DNA of 64,000 nt from Cercozoa sp. M6MM (Eukaryota; Protista; Endomyxa: Ascetosporea), in the NCBI GenBank assembly GCA_040357565.1, contig JBDODJ010000029.1; one strand, written 5' to 3'. The notes beneath the pieces are model-generated. The model made no database searches. It had not been told where the DNA came from and was given only the letters and a program-made list of their open reading frames with translations. Below, one piece after another: positions 1 through 18,079 of this stretch. Position 1 is the first letter of the stretch. Each line of letters starts with the position of its first letter. Made by a program: the position numbers and the translations under genes.

Positions 1-1114
1 TGTGCGACGAAAACGTTCGTCGCGTCGGAGGAAACGCCACTCTTTACATAAAGAAAGTGAAGAGGGTACAGGGGGGGGGGTATAAAGCATACTAGGAGCA
101 TGCTCGGAGTCGGTCGACGCCTGCTGCGCCAGAGGAACGACGCGTCGCTGCTGCGGCGGTGTTGCCAGGTGTGCCAACTGCACAGGGAAGGAGGGGGTAA
201 CGGAGAGGGAAGAACAAGGGGGGGGGGGGTAAAGTTGCACCTGGTAAAGAAAAGCGTGACAGATTATCTCGTCAGAAAACGGACGTTCCGAAGGATCGGA
301 CAGTCGTATACCAATCCACTGCGAACATAGAAAGTAAAGTGGGTAAAGAGGACAAGAGAGGGTAAAGGGGAGGGTGGAGGGGTAAAGACAAAAAGAGGCA
401 AGTAAAGGGTAGGTGAGGGTAGGGGTAAAAAGTAGGGGTAAAAAGTAGGGGTAAAGTGTAGGGGTAAAAGCCTACTAGAGGTTGGTCCTGCAAGAAGACT
501 CTCGTGCAGAGGTCGCTGCGCAGACGTGCCTCCGTGCATCTCCTCTCTGCACATACAAACACGGGCATGTTTACCCCTCTTACCACCTTACCCCCCCCCC
601 CCGTTCATACCACTGTGCGCACAGCAGGCGGCCTCGGCACACGCGTCGTCGTTCAGCGTCGCTTGCACCTGCTTCCTCCTCTCCTACGGGAGGGGGTAAA
701 GGGAGGGGGTAAAGATAGAGTTAAAGATGAAGGGACAAAGCAGTGCTACCAGAGCAACAGGCGTCCAGCAGAGCTCGCGCACCACGACGTCACGCAACGC
801 ATTTCCGTTCACTTCGTCATCTACCCAGAGGTGGTAACGGGAGGGGGGGGGGTAGGAAGGGACAAAGGGTTTTAAAATGCAAACAGCGAGCAAACGGCTA
901 CCCAAACGGCAAAGTTCGGCGACAACTTCGTTCAACAATTGACGCAGGCGTTTCAGAACTACAAAAAACGCGTGTAACCACCTCGAAGCAGTCCGCTTCC
1001 GGGTATCCTCGATCTTACTGTCGGATCGACGATGAAACTCCGGCTCCTCGCTCACACAATCGTGTGTATCAACCGGTCCTTCCCTGCAAGCATACCGTCA
1101 CTGGATAAAGACAT
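1..1114 (-). CDS. Multi-exon hypothetical protein, 3' end beyond window start; start codon uncertain
   Basis: GC-rich exon-like blocks (e.g. VLKRLRQLLNEVVAELCRLGSRLL, DDEVNGNALRDVVVRELCWTPVAL, RRCTEARLRSDLCTRVFLQDQPL) alternate with GT-AG introns that are TTTACCCC-rich on the minus strand. No family recognised. Confidence 0.55.
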
Positions 1115-1428
1115 ATCACACGTCGATAAAAACCTCCGGTACCGGTTGTGCGCGTGACCCGATAGGATCGCAAAACGTACACGACGCTCACACTCTTGAA
1201 CCATTATTTATCGTGCGTCTGCGCGTGATAATACTTGTGATGACACAATTCGGGCTTGCTTGCGTCGCTTAGCTCCCTTGAGTCCGCAAGAACTCAAGAT
1301 TTTTCTATATTTAAGGCTGCGATGCTTTGTAGCCAACTTGCCGAAGTTGGCAAAAACTCGCGCTGCTTGGCACGACTTTCGTGCCCAGCCTCGTGTTGCA
1401 GCAGTAGGAGTGGCATTTTTGATCATAA

Positions 1429-4400
1429 ATGAGCGGAGGACCCCCGGGCCAAGCACGTGGTCGCGGTGGCTGGCACCCGCGCGGACGAGGTCGGGGTCGC
1501 GGCGGCTGGCGTCCGCGTGGACAGGGTCGTGGCAATTGGCGTCCCCGCGGACGTGGCAGAGGCCGCGGTGGCGGTGGCGGTCCGCGCGGCGGCGGCAGTC
1601 ATGGCACGGTGCACTCGCATTGTTGTTGTTTGTTTTGTTGTTATATGTTCACATATGGTTATTTTGCGTATTTTCGTAGTATTTTGTATTCCCATTTTCG
1701 GGTTGTTTTTTCCTGTTTTGTGTTTTCGTATTTATTATGTTTTGCCAGAACCCGGCGGAGGCGAAAAAGACGCGCGAGAATCTCCTGCGACTGCTCGAAC
1801 TGGAGCGACCGGCGGCGCAGCAGGGCATCGTGCGCGTCGCCGTGCAGGTAGGACTGTCAGTCGGGGGGGGGGGTAAACAGAGGATAAACAGGGGGTAAAC
1901 GGGTAAAACAATATGTGGTGTTTAGGGATGTGGACACGGCCAACTGGACCACATTTACGAACTCGTGTTGGAACGGTACTCTTACTCCTTCACCCACTTA
2001 ACCCACTTAACACACTTAACACTTAGCACACTTAAGCCCTCTAACCCCTCTAACCCCTTTACCTCTCTCCCCCGACAGAGAGCAAAAGGAAGGAAAGCGC
2101 GTCGATCTCGTTTGCATTTGCGGCGATTTTCAGGCCATCCGCGACCTGGTAATTTCGCAACTTTACCCATCCCTTTTTTATAACCTCCTTTACCCCCCCC
2201 CCCCATTTACCTCCCCCTTACTCACTCTATCTCCTATCTTCCTACTTTCACCCCTTAACCCTCGTTACCCCCTCTTTACCCTCCCATGTTAGGACGACAT
2301 GCTGTGCGTGGCGCGACCAGAGAAGTACCACGAACTTGGACACTTTTGGGAGTACTACCAGGGCCGCATGCGTGCACCCATTGTATCTTTACCCCTCTTT
2401 ACCCCTTTACCCCTTTACCCCCTCTTTACCCCATTCCAGCCTACGGTATTGATCGGCGGCAATCACGAGGCAGCCACGCACATGTTCGAACTGTTCCACG
2501 GTGGTAGTTTTACCCCCAACCTCTTTACCCCCTTACCCCTTACCACCTTACCCCTGTACCCCAGGCTATGTGGCACCTGACATGTACTTTTTGGGACACG
2601 TCGGTTGCGTCGACTTTGCTGGACTGCGCGTTGCTGGTACAATCAACCCACCTACCCTCATCCATCTCTTTTCCCTTTTACCCTTTACCTCAACCCAACG
2701 TGCACACAGGTATCAGTGGAATCTTCAAAGCGTACGATGTGCCACGCGGCTACTTTGAGCGTTTCCCTCTCGATGAGTACTGTTCTTTACCCCCCTTTTA
2801 CCTTTACCCCCCTTTTACCTTTACCCCTTACCTCCCCGTACAGTCACGACAAGCGCTCCTTGTACCACCAGCGCGAGTTCGACGCACGCCGTATCGCCAA
2901 GCTAGGTACCCTTTACCCCCTTACCTCGTTTTGCCCCTTCCTTTGACTCTCCCCTTTACCCCCCTCCCCCGGATGTAGGCGTGGAGAGACAAAACATGCC
3001 GCGCCGTCGCGTGGATTTGTTCCTGTCGCACGACTGGCCCACGATGGTGACCAACACGCGACTGATGACGGCACCGTCAGTGGTACCGTCTGACTCGAGT
3101 GCTGATGCCGAGAAGACAACCGTCAGTGAGTCGACCACGTGCAGCGATCACACCGCCGACAATGGCAACGGTGTCACTGGTGATACCACTGGTGCTGATG
3201 ATACCACTGGTGCTGTTGATGCCACTGGTGATACCACTGACGGTGTGACCGACGGTGCCACTGGTGATACCGACGGTGCCACTGGGAAGCAGAACCGTGT
3301 GACGGTGCAGGGCGACATCGAGGACCTGCTGCGACGCAAGCGGCACTTCGCCGACCAGGTGCGGCGGCACGACTTGGGCTCGCCGCTGCTGGACCGCCTG
3401 CTGCAGACCCTGCGGCCGCGGCGGTGGTACCCCCCCCCCCTGCCTCCACCGTGTACACTCAAAGTGACCCCCCGTAGGTGTGCCGCCCACATGCACGTGC
3501 GCTACGTCGCCAATGTCGACTTCCATCGTATATAATTATGTGTACATCTACATATGCATTTCTACACACACACATATATATATAGATATATATATATATA
3601 CATATATTTAGATATATATATATAAAGATATATTAAGTCAATGTATTTGTCGATGTACGCATGGGGGCAGAACACAAGGAACGCACCGAGTTTCTTGCAC
3701 TCGGTAAGTGCTGCGGCAGACGCCAGGTGCAAGAATACCTGTACCGTGTAGCCATCCCTCTCTATGTTTGTGTCCCGAATGGACGGTACATTTGGACGAC
3801 TATGTGTACGTGTGGCTACACAGTGATGTGCTTGAATTTGAGGTCGCCGACGATGCCTCTCGTGTTTTGCGCTTCGACGAGGAATGGTAGTACCTCCTTA
3901 TCTCTCCTCTCTTTTCCCTTTTTTACCCCCTTGTACCCCCTCTGTATTCACCCTCTTTACCCCTCTGTACCCCCTTTTTTAACCCCTCTTTGTCTCACAG
4001 GCTTGCGGTGGTCAAGCAGACGGCTGAGAAGGTGCCGCTTCCGCGCTACAAAAACGATCTGCCGCAGCAGGACGAATTCGTCGCTCCTGTCACGCCCGAG
4101 ATGGTCCCTTTTCCTTTATTCCTCTTGCCCCCCCCCCCCCCCGCCCCGTTCTATCCTACCCTACTGTACCCCTTCCCGTTATCCCTTACCCGTTGCACAG
4201 ATCGATGAGGTGCGGCAAGCGTTTGGAGGTGCCACGGGGCAGTCCGACAGTCAGTACGTGCTCAACCCGGACGAGTGGTTTGTCGCTTCCAAGCCGCCAG
4301 CCGACCAGGTACATCTCGATCTGTCTGTGTCTATACACACTCACACATTTCTGTATATATACACATATATAGCAAGACCGACAGCAGGCACGATCGCCGC

Positions 4401-4856
4401 CCTTCGTACAGAACCCGCAAACGGCAAAACTGCTGCGCACGCTTGGTATGCATATATATATATATATATATGATGCATGTTGAATTGTTGGATTATTTCA
4501 TTCTGTTTCGTGTTTTAATTAATTTATTATTTGAATGTATCGCTTTGTGTATGAGTTGGCCTGTGTCTCTGCAGGTGTTGCTGATGTGATCGCGCAGCGG
4601 CACTGCCCCGAGATGCTCGTGGCCGCAACACGTGCACGCGAGGAGGCCGCGGTACTGCAAGTTGTTTAACCTGGTGTGTTTCTGTTGGTGACACTACACA
4701 ATAACACAGAACCCGGAGGAGGTGTCGCTCGACTTTAGCGATGACGACAGCGACGACTCGGTAGGAAGCTCGGTCTCTGTCCTGTGTCAGAGGTAGCCAG
4801 ATTCCCTACGTACTCTCCCTCAGGAACCCTCCGTCAAGAGGCAGCGTGTCGATTAG
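1429..4856 (+). CDS. DBR1: RNA lariat debranching enzyme with N-terminal RGG extension
   Basis: Spliced motifs VRVAVQ-GCGHGQLDHIY, CGDFQAIR, IGGNHEA, GGYVAPDMYFLG, RVAGISGIFK, SLYHQREFD, FLSHDWP, AAHMH, TEFLALGKC, LRFDEEW, C-terminal NPEEVSLD. Stop TAG at 4854-4856. Confidence 0.95.
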
Positions 4857-5386
4857 TTTGTGCGACAAGGTGCGTTGTCACTCGAGATGTGTTGTCGCTC
4901 GGGCACGGATAGGAAGCGCCTCGCCTGGCACACACACACACACACACATACACACGCACCTGGGTAACCCCACGACGGCACTTTGAACAGAACAGCGCGG
5001 GCCGAGTGTCATGCCCGTCCGCTGTCTACAGTGTCCGCCGAGAGCTCTCTTTTCGAGAACATGCACCCCTGAGTTGCCAACTGGTGTTCGTGTGTGCTGT
5101 TCCAGAGCGCGCTTCCTTCCGCGCCCGAGTGTTTGCTTGTCTTGCACTCGCTGCTTCCTCTCGATTCGTGTGCTTTTGTGTTAGACTCGCTGCTCCTGTC
5201 TACTTGGGCTGCTGACTTGACGCGACCTGACTTGACGTGAACAACCGAGCGACCACGGGCCTGACACGCCAATCGAATCAGTCATTTAGTGTACCGCCAC
5301 CGTGCAATCAATCGCAGTCTTTGTACAGCCGTCATGTCGCTGCTTATCAATAGAACGGAATTATACTTATCGGCAGTGCCCTGGTG

Positions 5387-13177: not shown

Positions 13178-14841
13178 TCAGTCTGTCTCCGCTGCCTGAT
13201 TTGCCAGATGCGATTTTGCGTCGGCAAGCCGCCGTTCCTGCCGTTTGACCTGTTCCTCCACCTGCGTTCGGTTAGGTAGTGCCAAGCGGTCAATCAGCCC
13301 GCCCATCAGAGTGATGCAAAAAGAAACACACCTGCCGATCGAACTCTCGTCTGAGACGTTCGCCCCTGTCGTCCTTGAGTTGCATCCAGCGTTGTCTGCG
13401 TGCATGCTCATAAGGAAGCGCACAAGAATGGACACAGGGATCCCAAAAAACTGGAGATACCTTTCCACAGGCTGACGTGTGTAGCCACAGGCAGTATCGG
13501 CCAGGTCGGCCACTTGAGCAAGCTGCGACAGGTCGGCGGCACCGCATGGTAGGTAGCGCACCAGACCTGCGGTGAGAAACAGGTACAAAATCACCTAGGT
13601 GGAGGGAGACAAAGAGTCCTACCACAGTCATTGATGACGTCGCAGATGCGATCGTTGAGTCGATCGAAGCGCTCGTCGGTCTCGTCGTACTCGTGCACAT
13701 TGGTGTCACCAGCACGCAGCCAGTCGGCCAGCATGCGGGCGTCGGCCATGTCGGCAAGCTCCTCGAGAGGTACCGATGGGGCGTGTGCCCGCGACGATGA
13801 CACCAAGTCCGCCTTGGAGAAGACTGTGTCCCACAACAAGACTCTTTTGCGGTAGCTCAAACACAACGAGACAGGACCGGCTGTCAGTATACCATTGATG
13901 TGCGGCAGTTCAAGGTGCGTCATTGCGAGCAGTGACAGCAGCGATGCTGATACCTTTCGCGGAGAACCAGAAGGAGTAAATGGGGAGGTAAGGGGCAAAG
14001 GGTAAATGGGGGGGGGGTAAAGGGTAAACGGGGGTAAAGGGTAAATGGGGTAAAGGCTGCGGTAAGGTACAAAGTGCGAGGCATCTGTGCACAGCGAGGC
14101 ATCGACGCAGTTGACAGCGACGAGTTGCACACCCCACTGGTCACGCATCCTGTACGCACACACTCTTTCTTTCGTCATGCAATTTTCCAAGTTGGCGGTA
14201 CTCTGCAATGAGGTCGCGCAGCGAGTGATGGTGCGTCAGTAGCTCGGCTTGTCCAGGCAGGTCAAACTGGGACACATGTGCAGACATGCACACTGGCTAC
14301 ACTGTGTAACATACCAGGAGAAACGTGTCGTCTGAAAGCAGTCGCAATTGTTCACGTAGCCACTCGCTGTTTCGCTGCAGTAGGTCCACTGCTCACGCAC
14401 GAGGGGGGGGGGGGTAAAGGTATGGAGGGTCAGAGAAGTAGGGTAGGCTACCACAGTAGATGAGACCTCCGTTGGGTCCCAATTCAAGCGACTCCATCTG
14501 CAAAAACGACGGTTCTTTTGAACATAACAGCCCCCTAAATGTGACATCTGTTTGCCCCCTTCATCGAATCGCGACATCGACAGTACCACATCCTCAAGGG
14601 TGACGAGTTCCTCGATATCAACGTCGCTGACGTACGGTGTTGTCTCGTTCGCCGGGTCCAAATTCACGATGGCCACCTTTCTTCAGGTTGAACCCATACA
14701 CAAACCACATAACGGTACCGAGCGACGAAAGTTAACGGTCAAGTACCGGCCCATTGCGCGCAGGAACATAGCCATGCTGGCAACATAGGTCGTCTTTCCA
14801 GACCCGGGAGCGCCAACAACCAGTTGGCCATACATTGGCAT
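13178..14841 (-). CDS. GPN2: GPN-loop GTPase 2
   Basis: MPMYGQLVVGAPGSGKTTY, VAIVNLDPANE, LELGPNGGL, FDLPGQAELLTHH, LELPHIN..SKADL. Confidence 0.93.
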
Positions 14842-15048
14842 CACGCACGTGCTCACACACTCTACTAACTACCAGGCGAGGCTAGATTTGCGCAATGTAC
14901 AGCAAGAAGGCCGAGACTTGAGATCTATTGAACGTTTAAAGGGGCGATCCATCAGCAGTGCTGCATAACTGCCTTGAGGCAGCCGGATAGCATAGGTGCA
15001 CACAATAACTCAGCGCAATCAACGTTGCAAGCTTGAAGTTCAGTCGGT

Positions 15049-18000
15049 TTAATCCCAGTCCGAGTCGCTCTCGTCGTCGCTCTCGTCGTTGCCGACGACA
15101 AAGTGCCGGTACTTGCTCATCGAGTCTTGCATCATCTCGAACATGTCCTTGGGCTTCTCCTGCGGCGGCGGACGCGTCACCGACGCGCGCTGCACAAGTA
15201 TACATGCACATACATGCATACATCTATTTATATCAGCATATGGTACATATGTATATATAGAGATATGGTACAGGCGATCCCGACGCCGAGCGCAGTTGTC
15301 GGCCAGCGCGGATGGCGGCGAGCAGCGGGTTGGCGGCGCCGTCGTCATCGTCGTCGTTGACCGCAGCAGCAGGCGCCGGGGTGGCCGCAGCGGCCGGCGG
15401 CGGCATCGGCGGTCGCGCGGTCGCTGCCACCGGAGGCTGTGGCATTAATATGGAGATATGTAGATGCATACATACACAGTATACATATAGGAACAGCATT
15501 GCATGTACCGGCATGGGCGGTCCAGACGCCAGCACGGGCGCAGGCGGCGGCGCGCCCATCGCAGCAGGCACCGGGGCCGGAGGCGGCACGCCCGGACCTA
15601 TACACAGACACATGTGAGAGTGCCCCTTGGCATACTTCCAGCTCCACACATACCGACAGGCGCCGGAGGCGGCACACCCGGCACAGGCGCTGGCGGCGGT
15701 CCTGCCGCACCACTCGGCATCGGCGCCGGCGGCGGGCCTATACAGGACATACATTCAAGCAAATAATATATATTACACATAAGTATGGGATCAGGGTACC
15801 GGCAGAGGTAGGCGCCGGCGAAGGCACGCCACTCGTTGGCACAGGCGCCGGCGGAGGCGCACCACTCTTGGCCTGCACACATACACATGTTTAACAGACA
15901 TACCTATGCACAAAAAAAGAGAGGTACCGGAGTCGGCGGGCCAGGAGGACCCGGCGGCGACGGCGGTCCCGGTGGTGACGGTCGCGAGGCCTGGACGGGG
16001 GAGGGTAAAGGGGTGGGGTTAAGGCACGGGACAGCAAAGACTATACAGAGACAACGGGTGTCGGTGGCTTGCTCAACTGCGCAGGTTCCGACGTCACCGG
16101 CATCTACGCACAGCATACAAACATACATACAAACATACAAACATACAGAGTCACACATACACAATACACAGGGGGGGGGGGTTATACCGAGATCTCGGGC
16201 TCCTCGTCGGCGTCTTCCATGAGTTCGCGCATCGGATCGCTGTCCTTGCTGCCGGGCACGTCGACAGCAGCGTCCAGTTTCACCGACGACGTCGAGCCGG
16301 CCAGATCGAACTGGTCGCGTCGGCGTCGGTGCGCGCTCTTCTTGAGGATCGTCGCCTCCAGGCCCTCGTCAGGCGTCGGGTGCGCCGTCTTGGACTACAG
16401 CAGAGGAGGGGGTAAGGTAACGCACAAACAGGCAGGGTAGGGGAGGTGTAAGAGGTAGGGGAATGAACGGGAGGGACAGGGCAGGGGACGCACCTGCTCC
16501 TGCGCGTACTTGTTGATGAGACGCGCCCAGATTCGCGCCGACTCGGTTGTACCGCAGCGCGCGTCAAAGGGCGACAGGCCGCTCGACGAGTTCGGGAAGA
16601 CACGGAAGCCCGTCTTACCGTCGACGTCGATCAGCTCGGCCTTGACGCCGTTCAGCGCAAAGGCGAGCTTCAGCTGTTGTGGTCACGAGCAGAGGTAAAG
16701 GAAAGAAGAAAACACAGGGGGGGAGGGTCAATAGTGCGACAGTCTACCTTGGCCGACTTCATCTGACGCGGTCGCGTCACGACCATCATGATGTCATTGA
16801 AGAGTAGGAAGAGGTGCGACTCCTTCTTTGTGCCCATCATCTTGAGGTCCTCCTGACGCACCATGATACGGTTCGGTGTCACCAGGTCCGCCTTGTTCTA
16901 TTCACAAGGAGGAAAGGCATGCTTAGGACTGACACACAAGAGGAAGCACACAAGAGGAAGAACAGAGGGGAGCTACCTTGAAGATGGCGTGCTGGATGGC
17001 GAACACAGCCTTTCGGCCCTTCTCGAGCTTGACGGCATCGGCAATGTTGTCCATCTGCTTGTGCACGGCAAAGAGCGCGCGCTTGAGTGCCTCGCTGTGT
17101 GAACGGACATTTTCGTATGTCTACCGAGTGATACAAAAGGAAGGAAGGAAGCAGTTGTACGCCTCGCCGCTCTGCTTGGTGTCCGGGTCCCACATGTCGT
17201 AGATCTTGGACAGCAGCTGCACGTACTTGGGCAGTCGCTTCACCGGCGCCATCAGCAGCTTCTCCAGCGTCGAGCCGCACACGCTCTGTAAAAACGGGCA
17301 AAGGTGAGGGAGGGAAAGAGAGAGGCAACAAGGAAAAGGGCTACCTCCTCAAACAGCACGAAGCGACGCAGGTCCTTGTTCTTCTCCATGAGCTTGTTGA
17401 GGAAGGCGATGCTCGTGTTGTTGTTCGTGATGTACGTCGAGTACAGCTTGAAGTACGGAATGTAGTTGCACATGATGTTGCCAATCTGCTGCACCAGCAC
17501 CGGCGGGCCTGTGCATACACAGCGAGATCACGGGGTGGGGAGAAAGGTAACGAGTGGGGAATACCGCCCATGGCAGCGTTCATGAGGTCACGCAACATCA
17601 TGTCCTGGAAGTCGTAGATCTCGCGCAAGTTCGAGAACACCTGACGGATTGAGGACATCGACATGACCTCCTTCTTCTTGTTGTCCACCACGGCCAGCAG
17701 GCGCGCGCGCACATCGTACTCGAGCACACGCAGCTGGTTGCGCACCTGCGCACACAAGCATACACCGGTTGGCTATCATTGAACCTCGTGTCTGCTAGAG
17801 AAACGCAGCATACATAGTTGTGCTCCGACTTGACAAAGTTCAGTGCTGCACGCGCGCACGACACCGCTGACGGCTTCGGCTGCACATAATTTCCATACAA
17901 AAGCCCAAGAACCCGCCAACCCGATCAGAAACCAAAAAGCATAGAAACTGCTTAGATCATCGCCTGTTCTACCCCCAGGCTCTGGCAAATGCACTGTGTG

Positions 18001-18079
18001 CATGGTGCAGAACACCCGAATCGGGGTCACACAACACATGATGCTTCTATACCTTTTCTTTTAGCTTCTTATCAGTCAT
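15049..18079 (-). CDS. RhoGEF (DH-PH) - polyproline - WH2/central/acidic (WCA) protein
   Basis: DH: NFVKSEHNYVRNQLRVL, IRQVFSNLREIYDFQ, PYFKLYSTYITN, LEKLLMAPVKRLPKYVQLL. PH: RIMVRQEDL..HLFLLFNDIMMV..ARIWARLIN. Several Pro-rich exons. WH2: NPLLAAIRAGRQLRSA. C helix: DMFEMMQDSMSKYRHFV. Acidic end: NDESDDESDSDWD*. Confidence 0.9.

Follow-up and report, generated by a model that had tools for sequence, protein, structure and literature searches.

A predicted DH-PH exchange factor carrying a WASP-type WH2-C-A tail in Cercozoa sp. M6MM, with relatives in Foraminifera

The window analysed here is a stretch of 64,000 nucleotides from contig JBDODJ010000029.1 of Cercozoa sp. M6MM (assembly GCA_040357565.1). 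Its minus strand carries a candidate gene whose product would combine the DH-PH tandem of a Rho guanine nucleotide exchange factor (RhoGEF) with a proline-rich region, a WH2 motif, a connector (C) helix and an acidic (A) tail, the WCA arrangement of WASP-type activators of the Arp2/3 complex. From position 18079 to 15049 this strand is a run of open segments that change frame at short spacers. A 16-exon model that uses only GT-AG introns (55-173 nucleotides) joins them into a frame of 1881 nucleotides and 626 codons with a single terminal stop; the first ATG lies at 18079 and the stop occupies 15049-15051. The exons have a G+C content of 65% (83% at third codon positions) and the introns one of 32-61%, many of them being TG- or TA-rich. 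The span 15049-18079 of the original prediction is the exact ATG-to-stop extent of this model, and the peptides quoted there were all found on the minus strand where it had placed them, the WH2 motif in exon 15 and the helix and tail in exon 16. Domain searches were run exon by exon, and the exons were joined solely to check frame, length and composition. The features of the gene are as follows.

15049..18079, minus strand: whole coding span of the 16-exon gene, 626 residues plus stop
18053..18079, minus strand: exon 1, nine codons including the start ATG; the least certain exon
16977..17861, minus strand: DH (RhoGEF) domain, exons 2-6, from Pfam RhoGEF on exons 3-5 and hhalign alignment to the foraminiferan family
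17879-17814, minus strand: exon 2
17745-17565, minus strand: exon 3
17508-17345, minus strand: exon 4
17285-17161, minus strand: exon 5
17094-16977, minus strand: exon 6
16494..16897, minus strand: PH domain, exon 7 (16897-16748) and exon 8 (16673-16494), by homology to the family
16188..16394, minus strand: exon 9, an acidic/basic linker after the PH domain
15344..16103, minus strand: proline-rich region, exons 10 (16103-16056), 11 (15990-15928), 12 (15872-15800), 13 (15737-15654) and 14 (15597-15509) and the early part of exon 15 (15436-15344)
15287..15343, minus strand: WH2 motif, exon 15 (15436-15272), by Pfam WH2
15094..15147, minus strand: C (connector) amphipathic helix, exon 16, by hhalign to the C-terminus of the family
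15052..15093, minus strand: acidic region with penultimate Trp, read directly, ending ...DWD-stop

The DH domain is recognized directly. Exons 3, 4 and 5 match positions 16-61, 72-116 and 127-160 of the Pfam RhoGEF profile with 20.9, 31.0 and 24.2 bits, respectively, a total of about 76 bits against a cut-off of 27.6 bits that one of the pieces passes alone. Because these matches are co-linear on three consecutive exons, they represent one DH domain interrupted by introns. The splice between exons 2 and 3 restores the CR1 motif SEHNY|VRNQL, whose foraminiferan counterpart is SEREYVENGL, and the closest sequence match of exon 4 among solved structures is FGD6. The predicted protein is, by its DH domain, a Dbl-family RhoGEF. 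The Pfam search of the N-terminal exons returned RhoGEF and nothing of the WH1, CRIB, WHD or WAHD type, which places the gene outside all named WASP-type subfamilies.

By direct family search, no part of the protein is as weakly supported as the PH domain. Neither exon 7 nor exon 8 gave a significant Pfam match to PH, and exon 7 touches the DH-PH junction of FARP1 weakly (E 0.53). Exon 7 is homologous to the N-terminal half of the PH domain of the foraminiferan family described below (E 4e-8), a region with a Pfam PH match and an AlphaFold2-predicted PH fold in the relatives. The predicted PH domain of the window gene is thus supported through its foraminiferan homologues. The linker encoded by exon 9 has no match in Pfam or to the foraminiferan family profile.

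The C-terminal half opens with a proline-rich segment of 154 residues, from exon 10 to early exon 15, that is 40% proline and contains eight runs of at least three prolines; it gives weak tblastn matches to the proline-rich part of the Nonionella stella protein P0006. The WH2 peptide NPLLAAIRAGRQLRSA follows in exon 15 (15296-15343), where Pfam WH2 scores 21.0 bits (E 2.7e-4) with the motif LLAAIRAGRQLRSA visible and correctly placed, and the same site is recovered by a whole-genome WH2 scan. After 18 residues comes the C helix DMFEMMQDSMSKYRHFV, encoded by exon 16 (15189-15049) together with the tail DESDDESDSDWD and the stop. The helix has S, Y, R, F and V in common with the invariant NYRxFV of 13 relatives. 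At the level of sequence, the gene thus has the WH2 motif, the proline-rich region and the acidic Trp-containing end by which class I nucleation-promoting factors are recognized. Of the three domains named in the original prediction, Pfam confirms RhoGEF (exons 3-5) and recovers WH2 below the curated cut-off, and its PH match is not significant.

A search with exon 4 of a library of 1.84 billion representative proteins, which holds neither the window gene's own protein nor a relative of more than 50% identity, gave five matches. Among these is P0002 (EukProt) from Nonionella stella, a RhoGEF whose C-terminus reads ...SLGNYRRYV... and continues into acidic runs with Trp. Searches that started from P0002 and were continued with an alignment gathered a family whose members, at least 13 in number, come from Ammonia, Bolivina, Nonionella, Reticulomyxa and unnamed samples. 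Its named members include Ammonia sp. P0016 (with the transcriptome label MMETSP1384), Bolivina argentea P0011 and N. stella P0002, P0006 and P0015; RFI_01661 and RFI_18153 of Reticulomyxa filosa are partial models labelled "hypothetical" or "PH domain-containing". The unnamed members lie on contigs of 1.3-2.6 kb, and the full-length ones, of 631-728 residues, on contigs of 2.3-2.6 kb that barely fit the single frame. The best match of exon 4 in the library is a different protein, P0001 (1752 residues), in which four RhoGEF and several PH domains share a single chain, with a total of 562 bits.

In Ammonia, Bolivina and Nonionella, DH-PH, the proline-rich region, WH2, C and A are found together in single chains of 631-1225 residues. 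In the relatives, Pfam identifies RhoGEF (78-90 bits) and PH. Members whose sequence extends to the C-terminus all have a WH2-like motif, then a helix of the type NLLQSTLxNYRQFV and finally an acidic stretch that closes with W-D-D or something close to it. Across the 13 aligned sequences, the columns of WH2, the C helix and the Trp belong to those that vary little or not at all, which points to selection on these motifs. Conservation of the DH domain is high in the five foraminiferan sequences that are complete. The AlphaFold2 model of one member, P0012, displays a confident DH bundle (predicted local distance difference test, pLDDT, 85-94), a PH beta-sandwich with its terminal helix, a disordered proline-rich stretch and short helices at WH2 and C. 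A Foldseek search with this model returned DH-PH tandems, collybistin, Vav1, P-Rex1 and Ephexin4 among others, with E values of about 1e-11 over some 350-380 columns. In P0016, alignment columns 714-746 hold a 33-residue insertion that repeats part of the WH2-to-C linker and the C helix and then diverges; an artefact of assembly and an isoform are the two explanations.

The exons of the window gene were aligned to the family with hhalign, with residues numbered on P0012.

Exon 2: family residues 11-26, E 5e-2 (weak placement)
Exon 3: family residues 27-84, E 1e-4
Exon 4: family residues 90-140, E 2e-10
Exon 5: family residues 143-181, E 5e-8
Exon 6: family residues 186-222, E 7e-3
Exon 7: family residues 223-271, E 4e-8
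Exon 8: family residues 335-355, E 0.5 (weak)
Exon 16: family residues 597-630, the extreme C-terminus, E 4e-9

Exons 2 through 7 tile family residues 11-271 with a slack of at most one residue at the five junctions from exon 2/exon 3 to exon 6/exon 7, and the corresponding splice sites are therefore independently validated, the placement of exon 2 being weak. A tblastn search with the Nonionella proteins recovers the exons in the same order on one strand, and the length of exon 1 is compatible with the short N-terminus of the foraminiferan proteins. The likeness thus comprises the domain order, homologous DH domains, PH N-terminal halves and C-A tails, and a common C motif S-L/M-x-x-Y-R-x-F-V with an acidic run and Trp. 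The differences are also considerable: the best exon of the window gene is only about 40% identical to the family, and its WH2 motif has the classical LLxxIxxG form, whereas that of the Foraminifera follows the MLAGIxGF pattern. A hallmark of the family is a conserved module of about 45 residues right after the PH domain (...NPVDLEKRLRKQKTS...ITDPEKIKEIEAWK; about 355-400 in P0012), predicted to form two helices and without a match in Pfam. This module, which also reads ...VDLEKRLRKQKTS...IKEIEAWK, is not recognizable in exon 9 of the window gene.

The family profile was also compared with the 23.6-Mb genome, and it matches only four places. Two of these lie in the window gene, at exon 4 (E 8e-8) and exon 16 (E 8e-3), and the other two are the post-PH module and the C-A tail of a second locus on another contig, C687. 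The match of the window gene to the family is beyond chance. The C687 locus was missed by a single-sequence genome search with exon 16 and was found through the WH2 and profile searches.

C687 locus 141-3200, about 272-1766 within it, plus strand: paralogue with PH domain, post-PH module, proline-rich region, two WH2 motifs and C-A tail

In this paralogue, the PH domain, the post-PH module (at about 700-815 of the locus; match to the family with E 1e-11) and the first proline-rich stretch lie within one uninterrupted frame of 285 codons. Downstream of it are two WH2 motifs and then ...SLANYRAFV...DDEDWD-stop. A long (TA)n(TG)n microsatellite forms the start of the contig, and the assembly therefore lacks the DH part. 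The tails of the two genes are 50% identical, an intron separates WH2 from C in both, and the C687 paralogue is closer to the foraminiferan proteins than the window gene is. The C-A tail is found genome-wide only in these two genes.

These comparisons bear on whether the locus holds one gene or two. In the two-gene alternative, a DH-PH RhoGEF would end after exon 9, with intron 9 retained and translation stopping after one further Val, and a separate proline-rich WH2-C-A protein would start in exon 10. This arrangement is formally possible because exon 10 starts with an ATG (at 16103) and the read-through of the exon 9 donor is GTA TAA in frame; moreover, WASP-like proteins that lack WH1 have been proposed (Kollmar et al., PMC3298513). 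Against it, the spacer that forms intron 9 (16104-16187) measures only 84 nucleotides, is TG-rich like the adjacent introns and has GT...AG ends, whereas the intergenic gaps that flank the gene are about 200 nucleotides each, before a divergent plus-strand gene that starts at about 18283 and the next minus-strand gene, from about 14856. The foraminiferan relatives have both halves within one chain, the C687 paralogue has PH and proline-rich sequence in one open frame, and the C-A type of tail occurs in the genome solely downstream of two DH/PH genes of the family type. We regard two adjacent genes as highly improbable. The locus is very likely a single gene whose predicted product joins DH-PH to the proline-rich region, WH2, C and A, and the single spliced gene of the original prediction is well supported by this comparison. 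Retention of intron 9 would give a DH-PH-only protein, and isoforms with and without the WCA tail could exist.

We consider it probable that the window gene belongs to a conserved family of nucleation-promoting factors of a class I-like kind, built on a DH-PH tandem whose DH domain is probably also active in exchange. In such a protein, the PH domain, and the DH domain when bound to its GTPase, would bring the molecule to the membrane. Profilin-actin and SH3 partners would gather on the polyproline region, the WH2 motif would hand over an actin monomer, and the C-A segment would bind and activate Arp2/3 so that a branch forms. Most likely, the DH domain would in addition charge a Rac/Rho-type GTPase with GTP at this site, and the loaded GTPase could then switch on the SCAR/WAVE complex, with positive feedback as the local result. 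In known families the N-terminal position belongs to WH1/CRIB, WHD or WAHD; here the DH-PH tandem would occupy it, and it may restrain the WCA segment until membrane or GTPase is bound.

Several observations weigh against this assignment. The WH2 score of 21.0 bits falls under the Pfam curated cut-off of 23.1 bits. HMMER comparison of the C-A exon with solved WASP-family chains in the PDB gave no meaningful match for the exon alone and none for a two-sequence profile, and its reading as an Arp2/3-binding segment therefore rests on motif features and position. The AlphaFold2 confidence is low for the WCA part of the P0012 model. The C-terminal half of the PH domain (exon 8), the linker (exon 9) and the WH2 exon (exon 15) have no match to the foraminiferan profile with hhalign, by which the window gene is a diverged paralogue.

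The lack of a statistical match between the C-A exon and solved WASP-family sequences is also an argument for one gene whose tail is not an Arp2/3 activator. In that case WH2 would bind actin monomers, or the acidic Trp end might autoinhibit the PH or DH domain, dock onto an adaptor, or bind Arp2/3 without activating it. The C motif NYRxFV departs from the basic pair that, from general knowledge, is usual in C helices, and the acidic polyD tail of Phafin2 is reported to autoinhibit a PH domain (PMC9324892). We nevertheless judge this alternative unlikely. From the proline-rich region through WH2, a spacer of 18 residues and an amphipathic Arg-containing helix to the acidic run with its near-terminal Trp, the full class I arrangement is there, and few columns of the family are as conserved as those of these residues. 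In protein-language-model features, the C-A exon falls beside C-terminal fragments that carry WH2: the foraminiferan tail and exon 16, which itself lacks WH2, lie nearest to short WH2-bearing clusters, one of them named WHAMM, with a score of 0.90 that serves as a lead only.

A second alternative concerns the other end of the protein. It may be a true nucleation-promoting factor with a non-catalytic DH domain whose regulatory role, comparable to that of the CRIB of WASP, is to bind a GTPase or to target the protein to a membrane. This would make the protein an effector rather than a feed-forward exchange factor. The CR3 helix has K-R in the window gene and A-R in Foraminifera, compared with the Q-R that is usual in the Dbl consensus from general knowledge, and Foldseek gave no subfamily-specific structural match pointing to a substrate. 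On the other side, the CR1 glutamate is kept both here (SEHNY) and in the relatives (SEREY), the DH part is highly conserved in the five complete foraminiferan sequences and modelled at pLDDT 85-94, and its Pfam RhoGEF score is an ordinary one (78-90 bits in the relatives). A DH domain devoid of exchange activity appears to us decidedly unlikely, and a factor in which both ends are active is preferred.

A wider proposal is offered tentatively. The family might constitute a probably Rhizaria-specific class of Arp2/3 activators in which exchange factor and WCA in one polypeptide would create a self-reinforcing patch of Rac/Rho-GTP and branched actin, maybe for reticulopodial protrusions or phagocytosis. 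Under this proposal, DH-PH may also be the autoinhibitory partner of the C helix. The family itself is conserved, has so far been seen solely in Foraminifera and this genome, and is probably Rhizaria-specific. The machinery that a WCA tail addresses is present, since the genome contains ARPC2 (143 bits), a CYFIP fragment, a weak WASH-like locus and more than 10 actin genes. A WH1 search of the genome gave no match, which is uninformative given the fragmented assembly and short exons.

Further observations concern the genome and the surroundings of the gene. The actin-family loci, more than 10 in number (C91, C127, C202, C134, C51, C70, C322, C49, C129, C39 and others), are split by introns, with breaks that in many of them coincide on the profile (at about 85, 189 and 217), which suggests that the actin genes expanded recently with shared introns. 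Contig C132 (about 4191-4899 and downstream) has weak co-linear matches to the WASH WAHD domain, then a WH2-like NSLLAAIRMAG... and a segment ending ...EDVDWD-stop, and holds a candidate WASH gene with TG-repeat introns. A WH2 locus on C590, GDLLAAIRKGNSLKKV followed by a helix-like stretch, looks VASP/EVH2-like, and C368 and C396 have two tandem WH2 motifs each. Next to the window gene, the downstream minus-strand gene (14683-14856) begins with what, by eye, is a P-loop (GAPGSGKTT) of the kind typical of GPN-loop GTPases.

The literature was searched for descriptions of this architecture. The families WAWH and WAML, proposed by Kollmar, Lbik and Enge in 2012 and defined by sequence alone (PMC3298513), resemble the window gene in that VCA tails are joined to other N-termini in protists. 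They differ in that GEF, Dbl and PH domains go without mention in that WASP-family survey. A survey of Dbl RhoGEFs in 175 genomes, including Reticulomyxa (PMC5499878), does not mention WH2, WASP or Arp2/3, and a study of the rhizarian cytoskeleton (PMC5455982) does not mention a DH-PH-WCA architecture. Our literature searches found no paper that combines DH-PH, VCA and WH2. The original prediction knew of no described family with this architecture, and that part stands as far as descriptions are concerned; the architecture is not unique to this genome, its relatives being already public as unnamed or hypothetical proteins. As far as these searches reach, the family is undescribed, with its sequences public as hypothetical proteins.

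To our knowledge, all well-studied WASP-family proteins receive Rho GTPase signals through a separate exchange factor. An exchange factor and an Arp2/3-activating tail in one protein would, if the prediction is correct, represent a new wiring of a central circuit of cell motility and a further class beside WASP, WAVE, WASH, WHAMM and JMY. For Foraminifera and their relatives, the molecular basis of whose pseudopodial networks is poorly understood, it would also offer a concrete molecular entry point to actin assembly. The prediction is amenable to two standard assays on small recombinant fragments.

Comparison with WASP/N-WASP, SCAR/WAVE and WASH reveals the same C-terminal order of proline-rich region, WH2, C helix and acidic Trp tail, and in all of them a family-specific N-terminal module decides the place and time of action. 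By contrast, the window gene has a DH-PH tandem instead of WH1, CRIB, WHD or WAHD, and, at the level of sequence, its tail matches none of their VCA regions in the PDB. The known members act downstream of Rho GTPases, whereas the window protein would carry the upstream activator. Among RhoGEFs, a parallel exists with the FGD/frabin type: FGD6 is the closest solved match of exon 4, and frabin, which consists of an F-actin-binding N-terminal region, DH-PH, FYVE and a second PH domain, likewise pairs an actin-binding region with DH-PH. Frabin differs in its FYVE and second PH domains and has no WH2-C-A. Intersectin-1L and Tuba (DNMBP) are Cdc42 exchange factors physically coupled to N-WASP, so that GTPase activation and branching take place at one site, and they would offer a functional analogy. 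In those pairs the link is non-covalent and made by SH3 domains that bind the proline-rich region of N-WASP; here, both activities are predicted to reside in a single covalent chain.

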